DNA of 64,000 bases, from the sequence record PQ287320.1. The stretch is one strand, 5' to 3'. A program made the position numbers and the translations under genes. The notes beneath the pieces were generated by a model. The model was not told where the DNA came from. It did not search any database and was given only the letters and a program-made list of their open reading frames with translations. Below are positions 3,001-44,530 of the stretch, piece after piece (the first letter of the stretch is position 1; each line of letters opens with the position of its first letter).

Positions 3001-5863
3001 ATGAACGCCTTCAAGGCGCTCGGCACCATCACCGGTCAAGCCTCGCCGGCGGCCGACGCCCTGGCGGACTATCAAGGCAACCTGGAGAAGCTGCGCGACA
3101 TCATCGTCTCGGAAGAGAAGCTGATGAAGGACGTGGGCGCCGGCGGCGAGTCGTTCTTCAACAAGACCAACCTCGAAGCCCTGGTCGCGGCCCAGAAGAA
3201 GTGGAACCGCTCGATCGTCGAGGCCCTGAACCCGATCGCCAAGGAAGCCCGGACCATGTCCGAGGCCAATGACGTCCTCGATCTGCGGGTCAAGGGTCTG
3301 ACGCAGGAAGCCGACTGGCAAGAGCGGCTGACCGAGCTTCGCAACTCGGGCCTGAACGTTGACCTGATGCAGGACGAGGCCAAGTGGACCCAGTACCTGA
3401 ACGAGTTGAAGAAGCAGGGCCTGGAGATCGACGTCAAGGCGCTGCAACTGAAGCCGGACGAACTGCGCTACCAGCAGGGTCGCACCGAAGCCCTCCAGGC
3501 TGAACTCGATCTGACCAAGGCGCTGAACGACGCCAAGCAGGCGAACATCGCCCGCACCGGCTCCAGCTACGACCGCACCCTGGCGGGGCTGATCGGCGGC
3601 AAGGCCAAGGACGGCGAGTCCTTCGACCAGACGCGTCAGCGGCTGGCCGGCTCGGTCGGCAGCGACGGCCGTAACGCGCTGGAGGCTCTGCAAGAGACCG
3701 CCGGCGTGATGGAAAGCTCGCGCATGGCCGACGTCAAGGCCAACATGAAGTCCCAGCTTGGGATCATGCAGGAGAGCGCGCGCCTCAACAGCACCCAGCG
3801 CGGCATCTACGAGGACTATCGCAACATCCTGGGCGAACTGCTCAACAAGCAGGGCGCGTCGCTGAAGGAACTGCTGGACTCGGCCGACGAGGAGACCAAG
3901 AAGCTCGCCCAGTCGTTCGTCCAGGCCAAGCAGGACTTCGAGAACCCGCCGGGCTTCCAGAAGTGGGCCGACGCCCTGGAGCCGCTGGACAAGCGCCTCC
4001 AGGACATCAAAGCCCAGTTCATGGACGACCTGGGCGGCGGCATCACCGACGCCCTGCTCGGCGAGGACGTCGACTGGCGCGAGATGCTGCACAACACCTT
4101 CAAGAAGCAGCTTCGCGCCCAGGTCGACGAAGGTCTGAAGAACGTCACCTACTGGCTGACCGGTCAGGACCCCAACGCCCAGGCCGCCAAGACCCCGGAG
4201 GCCCAGGCCCTGGTCTCGGCCGCCGATGTCCAGAAGCAGGCCGGCGACACCCTCCAACAGGCCGCCAACGCCCTGCTCCAGGTCACCCAGGGCGGCGCGC
4301 CGGGCATGATGCCGGGCGCTCCGGGAACCATGCCGAACGGCATGCCCTCGGCCGTCACGCCCGGCATGACGCCGCTGCAAGGCCTCGCCGCGCAGGGGAT
4401 CAACAGCGCCGTCCAGGGCGTCGGTTCGCTGATCGGGGGTGATCCGACCCAGCACCAGGGCGCGCGCAGCTTCGGCCAGCGCGTGGGCGGCATCCTGTCG
4501 AGCGTCGGCAGCATGTTTGGCTTCGGCGGCGGCCGTCCCACGGCCATCGCGCCCGGCGGGCTGGGCGCCATCGGTCAGACCCAGACCTCGGGCGGCGTCC
4601 TGGGGCTCTGGGCGCGGCGTTCGGCCTGACCGGCATGCAGAAGACCTCGACCATGGTCGGTGGCACCTCGGCGGCTGGTGGCTCGACGGCGATCTCCGAC
4701 GCCCTCACCATGGGCGGCGACCTGTCGCGCAACGCCGGCATGACCAACGCCTTGCAGATCGGCAGCGCCACCATCTCGGTCGGCAACGCCACGATCAACG
4801 GCGGCGGCATGGGGGTGGTGCGGGCGGTGGAGCCCCGGCGGCATGGCGGGCGGCGGCATGGGGCCATGGGCGGCCCCGGCCTGGGCGGGCTGCTCGGCAA
4901 CCTCAACACCAGCACCGTCGGCGTCGGCGACGCCATGCTGAGCCCCTTCACCATGGACGGCTCGGGCGGTCCCGGCTTCATGCCGGCTGGCTCGGGCCTG
5001 ATGGGGCTGCTGGGTGGTGGCGGCGGCTTTGGCGGCGGCGCGGACCTCTCGGGCCTGACCAACACCGCCGTGGGCCTGCCCGACATGCTGAGCGCCTTCA
5101 CCATGGACGGTTCGGGCGGCCCCGGCTTCCAGGCGGCGGGCGCGGCGCTTCAAGGCCTGAACATCACCCCGTTCGGCGGTGGCGGCGGCCTGGGCGGGTT
5201 CTTCTCCTCGTTCGGCCCGATGTTGCAAGGCGCCATGTCGTTCGCCGGACCGCTGCTGGGCGCGCTGATGACCGGCAAGAAGGGCGGCCCCAAGCCCCGA
5301 CGACCTACCGCACGCCCAACGGCGTCTTCGGTCAGGCCAGCCAGAACACCGTCACCGGTCGCCTGCTTGGCCCGCGCAAGAACATCTTCGGCGAGATCGC
5401 CAACCTCGCCATGCAGTTCTTCACCGGCGGCATGGGCGGCGGCGGGCCGATGGGACTGATGAACATGTTCGGCGGCGCCGGCGGCGGCCCGATGAGCATG
5501 ATGGGCTTCAAGGAAGGCGGCCTGACCGGCTCGCCGGTCAACAGCTACACCGTCTCCTCGCTGGGATCGATGTTCGCCAACGCCCCGCATTATGCTGAAG
5601 GCACGCAGAACACCAAGCTGGCCAACGGCGGCATGCCGGCGATCGTCCACCCGGACGAAGCGGTGATCCCGCTGTCGCGCGGTCGTGAGGTCCCGGTCAA
5701 GCTGAACGGCGCCGCCGGCGGCCACTCGACGACGGTCATCTCCCCGATCACCGTCTACGCCAACGACGCCGACAGCTTCCGCCCGGCCCAGAACCAGATC
5801 GCCCGCAAGCAGAACCGCACCCTGCGCCGCGCGGCCCTCCGGAACGCCCAGGGCGTCGGCTAA
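1..5863 (+). CDS. Tail tape measure protein (5' partial; apparent frameshifts near 155, 4620 and 5300)
   Basis: The 1471-aa Ala/Gly-rich ORF 214-4629 has the tape-measure N-terminal motif (YAFYGLSQAMAKGKISSEEFNRQIGEQIPG) and an internal LAWCAAFV..GHVGF..LGGNQ hydrolase domain. It continues in other frames to a typical TMP C-terminus (FKEGG..AIVHPDEAVIPL) ending at TAA 5863, directly upstream of the distal tail gene. Confidence 0.9.
4934..5129 (+). repeat. 46-nt imperfect direct repeat (150-nt period) in the TMP C-terminal region
   Basis: catgctgagccccttcaccatggacggctcgggcggtcccggcttc (4934-4979) versus catgctgagcgccttcaccatggacggttcgggcggccccggcttc (5084-5129). Confidence 0.85.
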
Positions 5864-5946: not shown

Positions 5947-6603
5947 ATGCCGAGCTATCCGTTCCACGACGTCCTGTTCCCCGAGACCATCAGCTACGGC
6001 TCCTCGGGCGGCCCGAAGTTCAAGACCACGATCTTCCAGGCCGACAGCGGCTATGAGCAGCGCAACAAGGACTGGAGCGACGTGCGGCACGAGTTCGACG
6101 TCGCCCAGTCGATCCGCTCGACCGAGGACATGGCCGAGCTTCGCGCCTTCTTCATGGCCCGCAACGGCCGCGCCCACGGCTTCCGCTACAAGGACTGGGG
6201 CGACTTCCAGATCAAGAACCAATTGATCGGCGTCGGGGACGGCCTGACCAAGGTGTTCCAGATCGTCAAGACCTACACCAGCGTCGGACAGGGCGGGACC
6301 GAGTTCACCTACACCCGCAACATCCGCAAGCCCAAGTGGGATTCGATCGCCGGCGTCAAGGTCGGGCCGGTCGTCCAGGTCTCGCCGACCAACTACGAGG
6401 TCGACTACGCCACGGGCCTGATGACCTTCGTCACCGCCCCGCCGGCGGACGCCCCGGTGACCATCGGCTACGGCGAGTTCCACGTTCCGGTCCGCTTCGA
6501 CACCGACTTCATGGACGTCACCCAGGAATTCTGGATGCGCGAGACGTGGCCCAACATCCCGATCATCGAAATCCGTGACTGGCAGGAGGTCACCACGCCG
6601 TGA
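5947..6603 (+). CDS. Distal tail protein, GTA-like (DUF2460 / TIGR02217 family)
   Basis: FHDVLFP..ISYGSSGGPKFKTTI..SGYEQRN..W..FF.AR.GRAHGFRYKDW.D..F.VPVRFDTD motifs; position after the TMP. Confidence 0.9.
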   Translation: MPSYPFHDVLFPETISYGSSGGPKFKTTIFQADSGYEQRNKDWSDVRHEFDVAQSIRSTEDMAELRAFFMARNGRAHGFRYKDWGDFQIKNQLIGVGDGLTKVFQIVKTYTSVGQGGTEFTYTRNIRKPKWDSIAGVKVGPVVQVSPTNYEVDYATGLMTFVTAPPADAPVTIGYGEFHVPVRFDTDFMDVTQEFWMRETWPNIPIIEIRDWQEVTTP

Positions 6604-8648: not shown

Positions 8649-11600
8649 ATGGGCGCCGCCATTGCTCTTCCGATCGTCTCGGCCATTGTCAGCACGGCGA
8701 TCAGCTACGTCTTCCCGGACGAAGGTCCGCGCCTGCGCGACGCCAAGGTCTCGGCCTCGACCTACGGCAACGTGATCCCGGAAATCTACGGCACCGCGCG
8801 CGTGGCCGGCAACATGATCTGGTCCAAGCCCTTCACCGAGAAGAAGAAGAAAAAGCGCGCCGGTAAGGGCGGCTCGTACTACAACCAGTACACGTATTTC
8901 TGCGACTTCGCCATGGGGTTCTGCAAGGGGCCGGTGAAGGAAATCCGCCGCCTCTGGGCCGATGGCAAGGTGATCTACGACACCACCGGCGGGTCGGAGG
9001 TGGTCGACAACAACAAGTACCGCTTCCGCTTCTATGCCGGCGACGAGGAGCAGCTTCCCGACAGTCTCGTCTCGGAGGACAAGGGGCTCGACTATGCCCC
9101 GGCCTATCGCGGGCTCTGCTATGTCGTGTTCGACGACTTCGCCCTGGCCGACTTCGGCAACCGCATCCCGCAGATCATGGCCGAGGTCTATGCCGGCGAC
9201 GAGGGTGGCGCGGCGATCATGGACGTCACGCCGCTCTCGGGCGACGTGGCGCCCTCGCCGGTGTCGGGGGCTACCAACTCGATCAGGCGATCATCGACAC
9301 CGACCGGGGCTACTTCTACCTCGTCGACGGCACGGCCGATCCGAAGGGTGGCGTCCTGCGTCGCTTCAAGCTGTCCGACGGCTTCGAGGATCGTCGCGAA
9401 CTCGTCCAGGTCCCGCCGAAAATCTATTCCTTCTACGAGAGTCCCGGCCTGACGGCTGTGCGCGGCCTGACCTCCAAGGGCGAACTCCTCTGCGTGTTCG
9501 GCGGGATCAACAACTACATGCGGATCGAGAAGCTCGATCCCTACTCCTGGGCCTCGCTTGGCTCGCTGGGCGTCAGCCACCCGTTTGGCACCACGCCTGA
9601 AGACAGCCTCCAGTTTTCCAACACGAATTTCAAGACCGGGCGCGACGACAAGGGCAACTACTATACCCTGACGCTGGGCGTGTTCGGCGAGTACAACATC
9701 TTCGACCCCACGACGATGTCGTACATGGGGAAGGGCCAGATGGCGGGCTGGAACGGTCCCGCCACCCCGATGTTCATCACCGCGCGCCAAGGCGGCCCGC
9801 CTACCGCGCGCCGCTTCTACCACGTCACCTATGACGGCGGCCCGACCCTGTCGGTGTGCAGCTTGGGCGAGACGCTCTACAACCACCCGCTGCCGGCCCC
9901 GGCACGCCGGGCGTGACCGGCTGGTGCTTCTGGGACGAAGGCGACCCTGGGGTGGTCTTCTTCTTCTCCGACGCCAACCAGGATCGCTACATCGCCAAGT
10001 GGTCGGAGACCACCGGAACCCTGGCTTGGCAGACCAAGCTCAGCAACGCGCCTTACTGCGGCTACCCCGTCTGGGGCATGGAAGCGCGGATCAAGGACAA
10101 CGAACTCCACTGGGTCTGGGACCAGCGCCTGTTCTCGATCAACACCTCGACGGGCAAGTGGATCGATCGCACCTTCGACCAGGACTTCTACAAGAGCGAC
10201 AACGACAAGACGGCCGATCAGGTCAATGACGGCGAGAAGGGCCTGGAGCTTCCTCGCGTGATCAACGACGACTACATCATCTACGATCCGCGCCGCAACA
10301 TCGTCATCGGCCTGGGAAGCCCGCAGGTCGAAAACGGCATCGTTCACGTCGGCGCCTATACCGGTCAGCGGACCAGCGTCGGGCGCATCGTCGAGCAGCT
10401 TCTGCGCACTACCGGCCAGATGACCTCCAGCGACTTCGACCTGACGCCGCTCTACGACATCCCGGTGCGCGGCTACGGTTACGCGACCTCGACCGACGTC
10501 AAGTCGATCATCTCTGAGTTGCGCAACCTCTTCATGTTCGACCTCGTGGAAAGCGACGGCAAGCTGGTCGCCCGCGTGCGCGGTGATGAGGTCGCCGACG
10601 TCGAAATCCCCTGGCAGATGCTGGGCTCCCAGGGCGGCCCAGCGACGACAAGGCCGATTACTGGAAGGAGACGCGGATGTCGGAATCCGATCTCCCGTCG
10701 GCGATCGACCTGACCTACATGAACATCGACGACGACTACAACCCGTCGACGGCCAAGTCCAAGCGCATCTCCGCCCCGGTGGCGACCATGCTGTCGCGCC
10801 AGCAGGTCAAGACCGAGTGCAACCTCGTCATGGACGCGACGGAGGCCAAGAACCGGGTCAACGTCATGCTCTACACCCAGTGGGACGAGCGCACCCAGCA
10901 CAACACCGCCCTGCCCTGGCGCTACGCCCACCTCGACGCTTCCGACCTGATCTCGGTCACCATGGAGGACGGCCGCAACTATTTCGACCGGATCGGTTCG
11001 ATCGAGTTCGGCGCCGACTTCTCTTCGCGCCTGGAGACCTACGGGACCGACAGCGGCGCCTACCTCTCCGAGAAGGTCGGCGACGGTGGCGGCGCGGGGC
11101 GCCCGACCGTGGTCAACGCCCCCAAGCCGGTCGTGGGCTTCATCATGAACACCCGCTGCTGCGTGACACCCACGACAGCGGCGGCAACTATTCCAACTGG
11201 TATAGCGCCATTGGCGCCGGCGCGCCCGGTCAGTTCTTCGGCGGCACGCTCTACAAGTCCGCCAACAGCCAGGACTATGTCGACCTCTACCAGGAGACCG
11301 AGTCGGCCGAATGGGGCACGGTGATCGGCATCGTCCCGCCGGCCTCGCACGGCTGGTTCGCCCTCGACTGGGAGACCAAGATCACCATCGTGCCGGCGGT
11401 CAGCTTCTTCGAACTGGAGTCGATCACCGACGACGAACTCTGGGAGGGCCAGAACGCCATCATCGTCGGCGAGGAGATCATGCAGTTCCGCGACGCGGTC
11501 GAGAACCCCGACGGGTCCTGGACGATCTGGAACCTGCTGCGCGGCCGGCGCGGGACGCAATATGCCTGCGATACGCACGTCGCCGGCGAGAAGTTCATCT

Positions 11601-23445: not shown

Positions 23446-26253
23446 CTAGCCCTCGCAGGCGAGGCAGTCGGACGACGCGGTCGGGTTGAGCGCCAGCATG
23501 GCGGCTTCCTCGGCCGAGCCCTCGGTGACGGGCTCCTCGGCGATGTCGATCTTCTTGCGCTCGATCTTGTTGTTGGTGTTCTCGGCCCGCTTGGGGGTCG
23601 ACGAGCGCAGATAGTAGAAGGACTTGACGCCGGCGCCCTCGCCCCAGCCCAGGAAGTGGAGTTCCGAGAGGTACTCGGCGTCCGCATCGTGGGGCACGAA
23701 GACGTTCAGCGACTGGCCCTGGCAGATCGACTTGGAGCGGTCGACTCCGAAGGTCACGACCCAGCGCTGGTCCATCTCGCGGGCGGTCTTGTAGACCTTC
23801 AGGAGATGCAGGCGGTCCTTCTCCGGCATGGTCACGCCATGCTCGGCCAGGAACTCGACCGTGAAGTGCTGGATCGAGCCCTCGGCCGCGACGATCGACT
23901 TCCAGACCGCCTCGGTGTCCAGGCCCAGGGCCGCCAGCTTCTGCTTCAGCCAGCGGTTCTTGACCGCGAACGAGCCCGACAGGGTCTTGTGCAGGAAGGT
24001 GTTGGCCGGGATCGGCTCGATCGACGGCGAGGTCCCGCCGCAGAGGATCGACGAGGAGGCGTTGGGCGCCACGGCCAGCTTGTGGGCGAAGCGCTCGCCC
24101 GTGCCTTCCATGTCCGGGGCCTCGCCGCGCTCCTTGCCGAGCCGCAGGGAGGCCACGTCGGCGTGCTTGCGCAGGTGGACGAACAGTTCCAGGTTCAGCT
24201 TGCGGGCCGCGTTGCTCTCGAACGGGATGTCGAGCATCTGGAGCAGCGAATGGAAGCCCAGCAGACCCAGGCCCACCGAGCGCTCGCGCATCGCGCTATA
24301 GACGGCCCGGTGCATCTCGTCCGGCGCGTTGTCGATAAAGACCTGGAGGCAGTTGTCGAGCATCCGCATGAGGTCTTCGATGAAGGTCGGGTGGTCCTTC
24401 CACTCCAGCCACTTCTCGGCGTTGACCGACGACAGGCAGCAGACGGCGGTCCGCATCTTGTTGAAGATGTCGCGCCCCGAGGCCAGCATGATCTCCGAGC
24501 AGTTGCCCGTCAGGTAGCCGTTGAAGACCAGACGGTTGCGCAGCGGCTCGGTGGCGCAGAAGACGTCGGCCTTGTGCGCCAGCGGATGGACGTCGGCGAC
24601 CGTCGCCGCCAGGATCGCGGCCACGCCGATCGCCGCGTCGCGCGGCTCGACCGTGTTGGCCAGGATGAAGCTGCGTTCCGACAGGTAGGCCACGTCCCAC
24701 TCGGCGAGCGAGAAGGCGTTGACGGTGTCGGTCAGGCGGATGCGCGGGTGCAGGCCCGACTCGATGGCCATGAGGCGCATCTGGCGGATCAGGTCGACGT
24801 CCGTCGAGCCCACGGTGAGCCAGCGCACCCCGTCGATCTCGATCCACTCGCCGGCCGCGTCCAGCGCGCCACCCAGCCACGTCAGGCGCCGGTCGACGTT
24901 CCAGGGAAACGGGACGACGCCGGGCGACAGGGTCAGGGGGTCGAAGCGCAGGGTCGTGCCGTGCTCGTCGCCTTCCAGGTTCAGCGACAGGGCCGACAGG
25001 CGCTTGAGCACCGCGTCGGGCGTGTTGACCGGCACGAAGGCCGACAGGCGGTGCTTGTCGTCGAAGCCGGCGAAGGTCGTCCAGCCGGCCGCGTAGGCGT
25101 GCTCGACCGGCGGGGTGCGCTCGGACACGCCCTCGATCACCGGCGCCTGGGCCTTGGCCAGGACCGTGCCGTTCTTCAGTTCGCCGGCCCGGACTTCCTT
25201 GCCGTCCTGGGTGTAGAACTTGTGGTAGGGCGTGCAGTCGATGTAGTCGCCGTCCTCGAACCAGACGCGCACCAACGAGGCCTTCTCGTCGGTGGGGTTG
25301 GTCTGGTGGATCAGCACGCGGCTGAACTCCTCGCCGTTCCAGACGTCGTGGTACTCGCCCTTCAGGGCCTCGATCGGGAGGTGACCGCTGCGGGTCAGGA
25401 TTTCGGTCTCGCCGACGACGCAGAGGTTCGACTGCTTGACCTTCAGGCCGAGCTTCTTCTGGGCCTCGGGGAAGTGGCGGTTGGAGGTGTCGATGAAGTG
25501 GATGTAGGGCTCGCCCGTCTGCATCCGCGTCTCCATCAGGAGGCGCCACAGTTCGCGCGCCCGCTCCACTCGGATCACCTCGCCCGTCTTGGGCGAGCGC
25601 AGGGCGAAGTCGGTGTCGTCGCGCACCGCGATCATGAACTCGTCGGTCACGTTGACCGCGTTGTGGAGGTTCGTGATCTTGCGGTTCTGGTCGCCGCCCG
25701 TGGGCTTGCGCGCGGTGATGAACTCGCGGATTTCCGGGTGGTTGATGTCGAGGTAGACGGCGTTGGAGCCCCGGCGCGTGCCGCCTTGGCTGACGGCCAG
25801 GATCAGGCGGTCGTCCACCGCCATGAACGGGATCACGCCGGTCGACTGCGAGCCCTTGGAGGTCTTCTCGCCCAGGCCGCGCAGGGCGCCGTAATAGGAG
25901 CCGATGCCGCCGCCCATCGACGAGAGCCAGATGATCTCGTCGTAGTGCTCGGAGATCGATTCGCGGCTGTCCTCGATCGCGGTGAGGAAGCAGGAGATCG
26001 GCAGGCCACGGGCCGAGCCGCCGTTCGACAGCAGGGGCGTGGCGAACATGAACCAGAGGTTCGAGACGTAGTCGTAGAGCCGCTGGCCATGCTCGGCGTC
26101 ATCCGCGAAGGCCGCACTCGCGCGCGCGAAGGCCTCCTGGGGCGAGCTTTCCCCAGGCAGCAGGTAGCGTTCACGGAGGGTCTGAAGGGTGAAGTCGTCG
26201 AGCAGGGCGTCGCGGGCAAGATCAATCTTGATTTCGGAGGGTGCGACAGCCAT
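23446..26253 (-). CDS. nrdA: Class I ribonucleotide reductase alpha subunit with an intein
   Basis: FATPLLSNGG, PISCFL, SQGGTRRGS, QSNL/CSEI, TAVCCLSS, LAVAPNASSS, CQGQSLN, KSFYYLRS and C-terminal CLACEG; no ATP cone. Confidence 0.95.
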   Translation of the reverse strand: MAVAPSEIKIDLARDALLDDFTLQTLRERYLLPGESSPQEAFARASAAFADDAEHGQRLYDYVSNLWFMFATPLLSNGGSARGLPISCFLTAIEDSRESISEHYDEIIWLSSMGGGIGSYYGALRGLGEKTSKGSQSTGVIPFMAVDDRLILAVSQGGTRRGSNAVYLDINHPEIREFITARKPTGGDQNRKITNLHNAVNVTDEFMIAVRDDTDFALRSPKTGEVIRVERARELWRLLMETRMQTGEPYIHFIDTSNRHFPEAQKKLGLKVKQSNLCVVGETEILTRSGHLPIEALKGEYHDVWNGEEFSRVLIHQTNPTDEKASLVRVWFEDGDYIDCTPYHKFYTQDGKEVRAGELKNGTVLAKAQAPVIEGVSERTPPVEHAYAAGWTTFAGFDDKHRLSAFVPVNTPDAVLKRLSALSLNLEGDEHGTTLRFDPLTLSPGVVPFPWNVDRRLTWLGGALDAAGEWIEIDGVRWLTVGSTDVDLIRQMRLMAIESGLHPRIRLTDTVNAFSLAEWDVAYLSERSFILANTVEPRDAAIGVAAILAATVADVHPLAHKADVFCATEPLRNRLVFNGYLTGNCSEIMLASGRDIFNKMRTAVCCLSSVNAEKWLEWKDHPTFIEDLMRMLDNCLQVFIDNAPDEMHRAVYSAMRERSVGLGLLGFHSLLQMLDIPFESNAARKLNLELFVHLRKHADVASLRLGKERGEAPDMEGTGERFAHKLAVAPNASSSILCGGTSPSIEPIPANTFLHKTLSGSFAVKNRWLKQKLAALGLDTEAVWKSIVAAEGSIQHFTVEFLAEHGVTMPEKDRLHLLKVYKTAREMDQRWVVTFGVDRSKSICQGQSLNVFVPHDADAEYLSELHFLGWGEGAGVKSFYYLRSSTPKRAENTNNKIERKKIDIAEEPVTEGSAEEAAMLALNPTASSDCLACEG
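24502..25422 (-). mobile_element. Intein (307 aa) inserted just before the RNR active-site cysteine
   Basis: QSNL|CVVGETEILT...VFNGYLTGN|CSEI: Cys1, terminal Asn and +1 Cys; degenerate LAGLIDADG-like blocks (YAAGWTTFAG, WLGGALDAAG). Confidence 0.92.
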
Positions 26254-41412: not shown

Positions 41413-41441
41413 TTGACGGCTCCCGCCACCTCCCCTATCAT
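41413..41441 (+). promoter_or_regulatory. Sigma70 promoter TTGACG-N17-TATCAT
   Basis: Near-consensus hexamers with ideal spacing; no protein gene downstream. Confidence 0.7.
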
Positions 41442-41447
41442 GCAGCC

Positions 41448-41755
41448 CTATCCTAGGCGCAGCACTGCTTCGGGCTACTCAGGCATCGTGACCTGGGTCC
41501 TCGGCTATGAAGCCTGAGATCGGGGAGTGGACTGCTATCCTCGATCACGACCGGAGGGCGCGTAGTCCCTCCTGAGGTGAACGCCGGCCAAGATAAGGCG
41601 ACGAGGCGTGACGCTGGGGAGAGGACCCAGGCTTGTCGTAGGCGTCGGGCAGTCTGAAGCCGGGTGTCCTATCCCGTGCCCGGCGTCTACGACAGGCGAA
41701 AGCCGACGATCTCCTTGAGCGGAGGGCGGGATTGGCCGATCGGGGCCTTTTTTGA
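41448..41755 (+). ncRNA. Unassigned highly structured RNA candidate (~300 nt, possibly extending to 41889)
   Basis: 20-bp helix 41631-41650/41677-41696 with 3 G-U pairs (which fixes the + strand); crossed helices ctcaggc/gcctgag and tcgtg/cacga; GGCGTGAC-GAGA module; TGTCCTAT loop. Confidence 0.55.
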
Positions 41756-41854
41756 GAGCCAAGGACATCCCGTCATAGGTCCTGGCCCGGCTACGAGGTA
41801 GGCAGGCCGGTAAACCGGAACCTCTGAGGCGCGTCGCCAAGATACAGCAGACGC

Positions 41855-41889
41855 AAAGAAGGCCCCGATCTGGCGATCGGGCCTTCTTC
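41855..41889. terminator. Bidirectional intrinsic terminator
   Basis: aaagaaggccccgatc-tggc-gatcgggccttctt with A and T tracts on either side, between converging RNA units. Confidence 0.75.
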
Positions 41890-42020
41890 ACATCCTGGTG
41901 GTCGGCTAATAGCCTCGACAGGCCTAAGTCCTCCAGGTCAAGCCTGGAACCACCCGGCCTTGCGGGGTCCAAAAGGACCCATCACCATGCGCCTTGCACC
42001 CGAAGGCTCGGGGCGCGAAT

Positions 42021-42109
42021 TGGAGCTTCGGGAGGGACTCGAACCCTCATAGGTGTCACCACCAGCAGAGCTTTGCAGGCCCGCGCCTAACCTCTCGGAC
42101 CACCGAAGC
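42021..42109 (-). tRNA. tRNA-Cys(GCA) with a long variable arm
   Basis: GCUUCGG/CCGAAGC acceptor, U73, encoded CCA, loop CU-GCA-AA, T arm GAGGG-UUCGAGU-CCCUC, variable arm GGUG-GUGA-CACC. Confidence 0.85.
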
Positions 42110-42292
42110 ACAAAAGGACCTCGACGCCCGAAGGCCCGAGGTCCGATCCGTAACCAGGGGAGGGCCGTAGCTGTCCCTGACCCTGAACGACAGGTGGCGG
42201 GCTTGGTCGTCATCCCGTCAGGCTCGCGGCGCCGCTCGCCTGAACCGCCGATATGCCACGAGGGCAGTGATCCGCAGGTCCCCACAAATAGC

Positions 42293-42326
42293 AAAAAGGC
42301 CACGATCGCGAGGACCGTGGCCTTTT
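42293..42326 (-). terminator. Intrinsic terminator downstream of the GOLLD-like RNA
   Basis: aaaaggccacggtc-ctcgc-gatcgtggccttttt on the - strand. Confidence 0.8.
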
Positions 42327-42329
42327 CGT

Positions 42330-43205
42330 TTTCCGATGGGCTGAGACTACACCCATCAGCAATCCCGCTTCGAGGATTATTCCCCAGGTGCGACCCCAGG
42401 TATTCCCTCGACGTCCACCAGACCCCTTGCGGTAGTCCAGTCCGAGATCATCGCCGCCGTTCTTGCGCACCCCGAAGGGATTGCGGGTCTGGCGTTTGAC
42501 CCATCATGGCGAACTACTCGACAGTTCCTTCCCCGCTGGGCTTGCGACCCACTCACCGGCGCTAACCGGCTGACGAAGCTCTTCCTATCGACACCTCGCG
42601 GGCTTGCGACCCTTGAGATGACTCCGTTACCCGAAGGCCGGAGCATTTGGCGACTTACGTCCGCCACTGGACCAGTCTTTGCGTTTTTCATCGAAGCGGG
42701 GATTGAACCCGCGACCGACAGCTAGGATGGCTGTTGCACTACCACTGTGCTATTCGCAAACCCACCAAGACGTGCTGGTCCAGTTGTTTCCAGGGCTTTT
42801 GACCCCAGAAATGCAACACGCCTCATGTCTTTCGCCTTGCGGGCTACTCGACTGTCCTTCGGGACCTCTGTCTCATCCAACCCTTCGGCCAGACTGCCCA
42901 GCACCCCTTGGACTGAAGCAAAGCTCTTCACCGCGAAGTGTCGAACCCTGCAACCCAAACGGTTATCCGTACTCCTTGGATCGAGTTGCGTGGGTAGTCC
43001 GGTGGCGCCGGACTGGTGGTTAAAGCCTCAGAGTTACCCAGGCCCCACCTTGTCTCCCTCGATCTTCAGGTCTATCCCCTTTTGCAAGAGGCGGCCAGCT
43101 TCCCAGCCCGGACCCGTCGGCTTCCTCTGTCCTCTTGCGAGGTCGGGCGGCCTATGGGAGACCGTCCCTGTCACCCCGTCGCCGGGGCTTTCGTCGGAAG
43201 CGACG
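42330..43205 (-). ncRNA. GOLLD-like giant ornate RNA (~870 nt)
   Basis: - strand motifs match the GOLLD consensus as I recall it, in the expected order: GAGUAGCCCGCAAGGCGAAAG (42829-42849), GUGUUGCAUUUCUG (42806-42819), AGCACGUCUU, CCGGUUAGCGCCGG (42556-42569), CCGCAAUCCCUUCGGGGUG (42466-42486) and GUAGUCUCAGCCCA (42337-42350). Many GNRA and UUCG hairpins; own promoter and terminator; phage tRNA-cluster context. Confidence 0.8.
42688..42759 (-). pseudogene. Degenerate tRNA-like domain (UCC, Gly-like) embedded in the GOLLD-like RNA
   Basis: Intact D arm GCAC-AGUGGUA-GUGC, anticodon stem ACAGC/GCUGU and T arm GCGGG-UUCAAUC-CCCGC, but A33, a broken acceptor stem and no CCA. Confidence 0.7.
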
Positions 43206-43211
43206 ATCAGG

Positions 43212-43240
43212 GTTGTAGCCGGGCCGGATGTCGTCGTCAA
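43212..43240 (-). promoter_or_regulatory. Promoter of the GOLLD-like RNA: TTGACG-N15-GCTACAAC
   Basis: The -10 matches the Caulobacter housekeeping consensus GCTANAWC exactly; -35 is TTGACG. Confidence 0.8.
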
Positions 43241-43363
43241 CGACTTTTTCGTCCTTGATCGAACTTTTTCGACACTATCGCGCCAAGTGGTTGATTTCCG
43301 TGAAGCTTCCATCAGGGCCTCGCCTACGCGCGAAAGGAATGTCGTCCGTCGTGACGTTTTTTC

Positions 43364-43393
43364 TTGACAGCGGGCCAAAGGCTCTGCTAGAGG
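43364..43393 (+). promoter_or_regulatory. tmRNA operon promoter TTGACA-N16-GCTAGAGG
   Basis: Caulobacter-type -35/-10 directly upstream of the tmRNA acceptor piece. Confidence 0.7.
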
Positions 43394-43399
43394 AGGGGC

Positions 43400-43770
43400 A
43401 TCGTTGTAATTCGGACAACGGAACTGGCGGCAAGACAGGGGTGCGAATCCCCTCGCCTCCACCATCGACGCCCGGCGCTGGGAGTACGCGACTCCTGGGC
43501 AGGGAGTGTTACCCTGGCGGGCTGCGGCCCGAGCCAAAGGTAGCCGGGCGTCGTTGATGGGGGCGACTAGCTTTCGATTGGCGCTCGGGTCTGGAAGACG
43601 CAACGGTGGGTGACCTCCACATCGGCTTGCCGGTGATCGGGTCAGGCAACATTAAATGTCGCCGCCAATGACAACGACGTCGTGGCTTTCGCCTCGGCTC
43701 GTGAAGCCATCGCCGCCTAATAAGCGGTAGAGGAGCCCGCCGGGAGCTTGGCAACAGAATCCCGGCACCT
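43400..43770 (+). ncRNA. ssrA: Permuted two-piece (alphaproteobacterial-type) tmRNA
   Basis: Acceptor piece ends AGGGG-UGCGAAU-CCCCU-CGCCUCC-ACCA (43464). Coding piece starts GGGGGCG at 43559, giving a G3-U70 Ala identity pair. Tag ORF (V-A-)ANDNDVVAFASAREAIAA** at 43658/43664-43723. 3' GGGAGCUUGGCAACAGAAUCCC motif; helix-2 complementarity between the pieces. Confidence 0.95.
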
Positions 43771-43776
43771 TCTTGT

Positions 43777-43849
43777 GGGCGTCGCACCGTGATTTTCACC
43801 CGGTGTCCTAGCCGGTGGGCCTAGCCCTGGCGCGGCGCGACGCTCTCCA
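43777..43849 (+). other. 73-nt tRNA-sized element ending in UCCA (pseudo-tRNA or tRNA-like RNA)
   Basis: GGGCGUCGC/GCGACGCUC 9-bp closing stem, then U-CCA; internal hairpins; no canonical T loop. Confidence 0.45.
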
Positions 43850-43991
43850 AGACCCCTTTCGCAGGTGGGGACACGAAATAGGCGATCTGTCGGGAAAACC
43901 GATCACCAACCCCCGTGTCCCCATCTTCGAAAGGCGGTCTGGCCCTCCCCTCCTTTGGTGTCCTATCCAAGGGGCCGGGCCGCCTTCAGAA

Positions 43992-44070
43992 CGCGGGGTA
44001 GAGGAGTCCGGTTGTCCTCGTCTGGCTCATAACCAGAAGATCGTGGGTTCAAATCCCATCTCCGCACCCA
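43992..44070 (+). tRNA. tRNA-Met(CAU), initiator type
   Basis: CGCGGGG 5' end with a C1xA72 mismatch, UCUGG-CUCAUAA-CCAGA anticodon arm, GUGGG-UUCAAAU-CCCAU T arm, encoded CCA. Confidence 0.92.
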
Positions 44071-44530
44071 GGACCCGAACGCCGGGGGACACATCAGAAC
44101 GATGGCGTGACAAGCCCGGAGAGAACGGGCACTCCAGTCCGGGGTATGAGGCCGGACTAGCGGACGCCGTAGTGATAGCAGGCGTGACACCCGGAGATAG
44201 CGGGACCGATTTTCCAGGCTTCATGCCCGGCGTATAAGACCGCAGGCCTCGGCCATCGGGCAGTGTCAGGGGATGAGGCTAGTCCTCGGCCAACCACCTA
44301 GCGGTGGGGCCAGGGCATGGAGCTTGGAAAGTCGGTTCGGTACGGTGGCTCGACAGGTAAGGCATCGGCCTCATAAGCCGAGGGGCTCGTCCCCAATACT
44401 GGTTCAAATCCAGTTCGTACCTCCAAGCTCCAGAAGTGCGCTACGTCCGTATAGCTCGGCCAGTTCGTGCTCCGGGGTGCTTCAAGAAGGGTATGGCCAG
44501 AAATGGTATGTAATAAGCCCTCGCTTCTGT
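44071..44530 (+). ncRNA. Unassigned structured RNA region enclosing the CAU class-II tRNA
   Basis: Two copies of the ACGCC..GGCGTGAC-stem-GAGA module; hairpins agtccgg/ccggact and tgcccgg/tcgggca; an 11-bp inverted repeat clamping the tRNA; no credible ORF. Confidence 0.5.
44339..44425 (+). tRNA. tRNA(CAU) (Met or Ile2) with a long variable arm and U73
   Basis: GGUACGG/UCGUACC acceptor, UCGGC-CUCAUAA-GCCGA anticodon arm, variable arm GGGG-CUCGU-CCCC, T arm ACUGG-UUCAAAU-CCAGU, then U-CCA. Confidence 0.85.

Follow-up and report, generated by a model that had tools for sequence, protein, structure and literature searches.

What kind of RNA is encoded by three similar modules in a non-coding part of a phage genome, and how far beyond this phage does it occur? 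The question is raised by Caulobacter phage BL57 (PQ287320.1), with which the stretch of DNA analyzed here (64,000 nucleotides (nt), in the following called the window) is identical in sequence; window positions equal record positions minus 62000. All three copies of the motif are located within a 3.3-kb non-coding island, together with a GOLLD RNA, a permuted transfer-messenger RNA (tmRNA) and four transfer RNAs (tRNAs). Judging from the sequence, each copy folds on its own as an RNA of ~45-60 nt (motif ~45 nt), in which an H-type pseudoknot is followed by the linker GACA and by a hairpin with a GAGAGA loop. The motif represents an RNA family that matches none of the families catalogued in Rfam 15, and copies were found in nine or more bacterial phyla, both in phages and in prophages. 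Its fold, conservation, spread and genomic placement were established in this analysis, and a tentative proposal for its function is put forward below.

The three copies in phage BL57

The copies and their parts, given in window positions, are:

41576-41630, plus strand: motif copy 1 (from the sequence; covariance model R1, 43 bits, E 9e-10)
41576-41578 with 41587-41589: pseudoknot of copy 1
41581-41585 with 41605-41609: stem A of copy 1
41610-41613: linker GACG of copy 1 (GAC at 41610-41612)
41614-41618 with 41626-41630: stem B of copy 1, loop 41619-41625
44074-44130, plus strand: motif copy 2 (39.7 bits), beginning 3 nt past the CCA of a tRNA-Met
44074-44076 with 44085-44087: pseudoknot of copy 2
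44079-44083 with 44104-44108: stem A of copy 2, followed by the linker GACAA at 44109-44113
44114-44118 with 44126-44130: stem B of copy 2, loop 44119-44125
44160-44204, plus strand: motif copy 3 (39.8 bits)
44160-44161 with 44172-44173: pseudoknot of copy 3, register shifted by 2
44164-44168 with 44181-44185: stem A of copy 3, followed by the linker GACA at 44186-44189
44190-44193 with 44201-44204: stem B of copy 3, loop 44194-44200

In BL57, stem A comprises 5 base pairs (bp; ACGCC/GGCGU), encloses a loop of 12-20 nt and is followed by GAC plus one or two further bases and by stem B (4-5 bp), whose 7-nt loop opens with GAGA. A previous inspection of the letters without any database search (the sequence-only reading) had placed three modules here, all on the plus strand, and both the sequence and the covariance model (E ~1e-9) confirm them. 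Their positions were right except for the start, which lies 3-5 nt further 5′ because the bases there pair with the first loop. As MAFFT misaligned the three BL57 copies when given these alone, the covariance model was built from 44 sequences, namely 41 unrelated viral contigs and the three copies. With this model the copies scored 40-43 bits, and the next best hit in the window 10.5 bits. A strict pattern matched the window four times, while 0.11 matches were expected from shuffled sequences; the fourth match (23820-23838, minus strand) misfits the model. No additional strict copy was found across the whole BL57 record.

Copies 2 and 3 are retained in every phage of the phiCbK group that was examined. 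Copy 1 persists in this group but has diverged, stem B being altered and its loop reading C-CAGAG-G, and the phages Colossus and PW contain five copies each, one of them 6 nt 5′ of tRNA-Cys. The changes among these orthologues are compensatory. In copy 2, GCCCG/CGGGC forms stem B in BL57 and GCUCG/CGAGC does so in phiCbK; in copy 1, the stem B CUGGG/CCCAG of BL57 corresponds to AUGGG/CCCAU of PW, and stem A of copy 3 is compensated in CcrBL10 (ACGUC/GACGU). The pseudoknot pairs of copy 2 change likewise, from CCC/GGG in BL57 to CCU/AGG in Rogue and RBC8 and GC/GC in phiCbK.

Structure and covariation of the motif

The consensus of the family begins with G (position -4), any base, G and A, followed by ACGCC as the 5′ strand of stem A, a G, a variable loop ending in A and the 3′ strand GGCGU. 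GACA, stem B (4-6 bp) around its loop and an A, which is often followed by C, complete the motif. The first loop alone varies in length (0-85 nt), the 5′ flank has the profile S-G-B-G-A and the linker the sequence GACA. Stem B, 4 or 5 bp long in 117 of 123 copies, is always closed by a G-C pair and encloses GAGAGA, a loop of 6 nt in the family as compared with 7 nt in the BL57 copies. On the 3′ side of stem B, a preference exists only for A at +1 (65%) and for C at +2 (54%). Conservation ends sharply at both sides, at -5 on the 5′ side and at about +2 on the 3′ side.

That the stems change in concert while GGCGUGAC and GAGA stay fixed had already been noticed in the three BL57 copies, and the family alignments much strengthen this observation. 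For stem B, 89-92% of the cells are paired and double changes occur in four of the five pairs; the score of the whole structure was reached by none of 500 shuffles. Stem A is nearly invariant, and its rare variants are either compensated (ACGUC/GACGU and ACACC/GGUGU) or contain a wobble pair (ACGUC/GGCGU).

A scan for pairing between the flank and the loop gave one clear signal, namely the antiparallel pairing of positions -3, -4 and, less strongly, -5 with loop positions +2, +3 and +4. At the three positions of this pseudoknot, pairing amounts to 69%, 74% and 50%, with GC, CG, UA, AU and GU pairs all being present, and a scan of registers exhibited a sharp peak at register 0 (0.65 vs 0.33-0.45 elsewhere). 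Covariation counts on three alignments that had not been fitted to the pseudoknot helix agree with it, and all three BL57 copies are able to form it (2-3 bp joining the 5′ edge to the first loop). Together with stem A it constitutes an H-type pseudoknot, with GA as first loop (2 nt), G as junction (1 nt) and the rest of the loop as third strand. A role in tertiary structure, as suggested by the sequence-only reading, gains support from this pseudoknot, which that reading had missed, as it had missed the spread of the family over bacterial phyla.

A helix between the 5′ and the 3′ flank, which would create a three-way junction, gave no pairing signal in the flank/loop scan. A tandem sheared G-A extension of stem A or a kink-turn, both considered from the sequence, were dropped as it is the pseudoknot that has covariation. 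The GTGACA of the motif together with a -10 box might be mistaken for a sigma-70 promoter; this was rejected because the hexamers further downstream show no consistency and because of the covariation of the stems. Likewise, a Shine-Dalgarno role of the GGAG in the loop was rejected, as many copies have their own Shine-Dalgarno sequence further 3′ or precede tRNAs.

Occurrence of the motif

An exact-pattern scan of IMG/VR matched at least 120 stretches, and a proper stem B around GAGAGA was found in 49 of the 128 matches listed, every stem having a different sequence. Further scans covered a second viral set and one genome per prokaryotic species (among the matches listed). Covariance-model searches of the scanned loci gave 86, 73 and 74 hits, which correspond to at least 206 distinct sequences. 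Building such a model had been the proposed check of the motif, and it retrieved more than 200 homologues. According to the record titles and among the matches listed, hits with E <0.001 come from all classes of Proteobacteria and from Acidobacteriota, Verrucomicrobiota, Planctomycetota, Gemmatimonadota, Chloroflexota, Cyanobacteria, Actinobacteriota and Myxococcota. In archaea, the pattern matches have no stems and look fortuitous. Among cultured phages, a copy is present for example in Cronobacter phage CS01, Pseudomonas phage Medea1, Stenotrophomonas phage Pokken and Rhodobacter phage RcCWillis, and Planktothrix phage Pag-Yong1 contains two copies in tandem. For a copy from Morganella, no match was found in complete genomes of E. 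coli.

Across phages with unrelated genes and with hosts in nine phyla, ~22 bases of the motif are fixed. As in ribozyme cores, this invariance suggests either that the RNA functions autonomously or that its partner is universal, and an RNA of 45 nt that is kept in this way by unrelated phages must serve something basic. Whichever function holds, the covariance model can be used for the annotation of phage genomes.

Genomic placement

Of the loci whose genes could be checked, nearly all have their copies between genes and in the orientation of the flanking genes; in CS01, Medea1, Pokken and Pag-Yong1, for example, the genes 3′ of the copy are on the strand of the copy. Exceptions are RcCWillis, in which the copy lies between two genes of the opposite strand, and the lambdoid Enterobacteria phage mEp390, in which a weak match (5761-5812) lies within an annotated small open reading frame. 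In about half of the loci a reading frame on the same strand begins 10-35 nt past stem B. Tandem arrays of two to four copies follow major capsid genes and precede downstream genes; in one group of phages a copy is found 72 nt past the major head gene, with up to three copies before the next gene, and in Mu-like prophages the motif lies after gpT or before gp36. No protein family is common to the neighboring genes of the motif loci.

Three-copy arrays were also observed at 9980-10260 of locus L207 and in its relatives L034, L147, L197, L199, L205, L211, L213 and L214. There, stem A occurs in the versions ACACC, ACGCC and ACGC, each copy is preceded by a hairpin of its own, and a box, GCGACACCUGCC, recurs between the capsid gene and the next gene. 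The same viral contig L207 contains a match to the abiF RNA (RF03085; 1977-2013, 43 bits).

A tRNA on the same strand lies within 40 nt of 23 of the 206 copies. Where the tRNA is upstream, its 3′ end is 2-4 nt before G(-4) in eight of 13 cases, five of these eight representing one orthologous site, and where it is downstream, it begins 3-12 nt past stem B (14 of 15 cases). In Microbacterium binotii (L268, 5961-6050, minus strand) a 3′ fragment of a tRNA ending in CCA is followed by the motif and by tRNA-Thr and tRNA-Gly; the fragment looks like the remnant of a prophage attachment site. A reading of this motif as lying exactly between two tRNAs was rejected, since the upstream element is a tRNA 3′ fragment.

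Proposed function

The sharp 5′ boundary of conservation resembles that of ribozymes cutting at their 5′ end, and the tRNA ends close to G(-4) bring to mind the tRNA-adjacent theta ribozymes. Moreover, exonucleolytic trimming of a tRNA would presumably be hindered by a pair of stable GC-rich helices adjoining its 3′ end. Taken together, boundary, tRNA ends and trimming problem point to a cut at the 5′ edge. In the pseudoknot, two or three bases at the 5′ edge are paired with the first part of the first loop and would stack upon the nearly invariant ACGCC/GGCGU helix. In the mechanism proposed here, the motif would punctuate polycistronic phage transcripts by a cut at its own 5′ edge, made by the RNA itself as in HDV-like (hepatitis delta virus-like) theta or hatchet ribozymes. 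Such a cut would free the 3′ end of the upstream tRNA or messenger RNA (mRNA), while the downstream RNA would keep a folded cap. We infer the cut, its position and its execution by the RNA itself. The motif might accordingly belong to a new class of small self-cleaving ribozymes, by which tailed phages and prophages of at least nine phyla would cut polycistronic transcripts at tRNA and gene boundaries, a tentative idea that is ranked first among the explanations considered because the conservation of unpaired bases is typical of ribozyme cores. The compact fold with its pseudoknot, the fixed 4-nt linker and the held length of stem B fit this idea, as do copies placed 10-35 nt before a start codon, behind major capsid genes or in tandem.

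Several points weigh against self-cleavage. No conserved cleavage dinucleotide can be named as the bases at the proposed site vary. The adjacency to tRNAs (about nine independent sites) could simply reflect compact tRNA arrays, and five other upstream tRNAs are 11-21 nt away. Known ribozymes were not found near the copies in 16 loci. Finally, Logan contigs from four RNA sequencing (RNA-seq) runs of a phiCbK-like infection, which cover 43987-44426 at the depth of the neighboring genes, run straight through copies 2 and 3; as RNA ends are not visible in contigs and some of the signal may come from carried-over DNA, they are neutral on cleavage.

A cut at the same place could also be made by the host. 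A rod of ~12-13 bp with a loop of 6-7 nt at its end could arise if the pseudoknot (2-3 bp) were stacked with stem A (5 bp) and stem B (4-5 bp), and such a mimic of a tRNA minihelix would be cut at its 5′ edge by ribonuclease P (RNase P), with the upstream RNA as 5′ leader. RNase P is known to cut tRNA-like structures of viruses that contain a pseudoknot, and among phage RNAs it cuts, for instance, P1 C4 and P4 CI. It is universal, which fits the spread over phyla, and it already acts at the tRNAs which copies adjoin. As the stacked helices have the dimensions of a minihelix (the helix lengths sum to 11-13 bp, as in the acceptor/T-arm of tRNA, with stacking being assumed), this explanation is ranked second, although it appears rather improbable: coaxial stacking is an assumption, the family does not conserve a 3′ RCCA (only 12 of 123 copies have ACCA next to stem B) and RNase P reads shape, so that 22 invariant bases exceed the needs of a mimic.

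The arrays of two to four copies after major capsid genes and before downstream genes would also suit a roadblock, i.e., a mechanically stable fold that stops exonucleases or RNase E and thereby protects flanking segments of mRNA or tRNA. Flaviviral exonuclease-resistant RNAs (xrRNAs) are such roadblocks and likewise occur in tandem; the motif itself has a pseudoknotted fold, and a roadblock requires no phage-specific partner. However, a roadblock directly 3′ of a tRNA would impede its maturation, roadblocks seldom need so many fixed unpaired bases and the pseudoknot of the motif has only 2-3 bp; this function is considered unlikely.

Equally unlikely, and like the roadblock ranked below RNase P mimicry, is a site to which a conserved machine or protein of the host binds, be it RNA polymerase (as in the case of put RNA), the ribosome or a protein with affinity for RNA, and by which the motif would modulate elongation, translation or packaging; the protein-binding motif of the sequence-only reading falls under this explanation. 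The two-helix shape, with a first helix that is likely crossed by a strand in its groove, resembles the V-shaped put (PMC9378689), and the BL57 copies are located in separate (predicted) transcription units. In mEp390 (L340), weak and partly degenerate variants (~19 bits; 5761-5812 and 5986-6025) are situated ~150 and ~380-400 nt 3′ of a pL-like promoter, where a nut/put site would be expected. Yet the model finds nothing in HK022, copies in tandem or between tRNAs would be unexpected for a put-like element and the flanking genes share no protein family. Both BL57 units end at (predicted) terminators facing minus-strand genes, so that read-through would give antisense RNA.

The unrelated downstream genes (capsid-module genes, an exonuclease, tRNAs) bear as well on a ligand-sensing riboswitch aptamer. 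Small pseudoknotted aptamers are similarly conserved and tandem aptamers exist, but these genes share no theme, no expression platform is present and none of the Rfam riboswitches matches; this explanation is very improbable. What probability remains belongs to something not yet considered. Should the motif be an RNase P recruiter, a nuclease block or a polymerase binder, it would represent a compact and portable part for the control of RNA ends.

The non-coding island of BL57

The further features of the island, in window positions, are:

41413-41441, plus strand: promoter-like site (predicted), with 10 of 12 consensus matches, ~135 nt 5′ of copy 1
42338-42824, minus strand: GOLLD RNA (169.7 bits)
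42687-42760, minus strand: tRNA-Gly fold within the variable region of GOLLD
43402-43720 (stretch 43402-43811), plus strand: permuted (two-piece) tmRNA, encoded by the phage
43992-44070, plus strand: tRNA-Met with encoded CCA, immediately 5′ of copy 2
44136-44158, plus strand: spacer hairpin (7 bp, 9-nt loop) between copies 2 and 3
44339-44425, plus strand: second tRNA-Met, closing the inter-tRNA spacer that contains copies 2 and 3
minus strand: tRNA-Cys and tRNA-Gly of the island

A hairpin immediately 5′ of a motif copy recurs in other phages as well. Directly 3′ of copy 1 there is a hairpin with a stem of ~20 bp (41631-41695, plus strand), and beyond it a terminator-like hairpin near 41855-41887. 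This layout of promoter-like site, hairpin and terminator-like site suggests that copy 1 might be part of a non-coding RNA of ~440 nt. The two separate transcripts to which the sequence-only reading had assigned the copies are predicted from such promoter-like and terminator-like sites. In the infection RNA-seq contigs mentioned above, the GOLLD stretch is 10-100 times deeper than its surroundings. The tag encoded by the BL57 tmRNA has 20 residues and ends with AA, and a TTGACA box is present near this RNA (43364-43369). In CcrColossus and CcrPW, a gene for an RNA ligase lies ~3 kb past the island of tRNAs and motif copies; phages with theta ribozymes have been reported to be enriched in RNA ligases (PMC10879173).

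Comparison with known RNAs

With E values of up to 10 allowed, no Rfam 15 family matched the BL57 copies; canonical copies in 11 other loci had no match either, nor had a 206-nt slice at this threshold, so the motif is not part of a known Rfam family. Literature searches found no published description, although large catalogues such as PMC10690425 may contain the motif without a name.

With the hammerhead the motif shares a helix that has GA on both sides and is followed by a second hairpin, and permuted hammerheads contain pseudoknots too (PMC10085705). Identity was rejected, as CUGANGA and GAAA are missing, position -4 is G instead of the required A6, the linker is GACA and Rfam gave no hit. 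The Mu-gpT-DE RNA motif (RF03012; PMC7657543) is comparable in that some copies of our motif lie just 3′ of Mu-like gpT major head genes, whereas many others are found in different contexts; RF03012 remained silent even at E 10, including the locus L238 with gpT 124 nt upstream of the motif, and identity was therefore rejected. The put RNA of HK022, an antiterminator, is V-shaped with a triplex as its first stem (PMC9378689). Like the motif, it is a two-helix RNA acting in cis, and it occurs once in each of two phage transcription units, but the motif is shorter, arranged in tandem, adjacent to tRNAs and far more widespread, and model R2 found nothing better than E 0.19, and no full motif, in the whole HK022 genome. 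In pseudoknotted tRNA-like structures and other non-tRNA substrates of RNase P, a pseudoknot builds an acceptor-like helix with overall minihelix dimensions, as it would in the motif if the helices stack; the motif differs from them in the order of its elements and has no conserved 3′ CCA or T-loop sequence.

Hatchet, pistol, twister and twister-sister ribozymes differ in helix count and conserved bases and have no Rfam match at E up to 10. Nevertheless, they are alike in size (~50-80 nt), in their occurrence in phage-related intergenic DNA and in their conserved unpaired bases, and hatchet cuts at its own 5′ end, as is proposed for the motif. The theta ribozymes are small, pseudoknotted HDV-like ribozymes of gut phages, often located directly 3′ of tRNAs (PMC10879173). 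Their identity with the motif was rejected, since the helix order is wrong (P1-P2-P3-P1′-P4-P2′ vs a-b-a′-b′ plus a 3′ hairpin) and the HDV models of Rfam remained silent; nested P2 and P3 are impossible in a Colossus copy because its first loop has 5 nt. HDV-like ribozymes need G1-U at the cleavage site, whereas the first pair of stem A is A-U and the motif has no J4/2 cytosine. The hosts differ as well, being Bacteroidota and Bacillota for phages with theta ribozymes, and Proteobacteria and eight other phyla for the motif. Common to both are the lack of a requirement for upstream sequence and a proposed role in the processing of tRNA 3′ trailers. If the motif is indeed self-cleaving, it would constitute a new ribozyme class, and ribozyme-based processing of tRNAs and mRNAs would extend from gut phages to phages generally.

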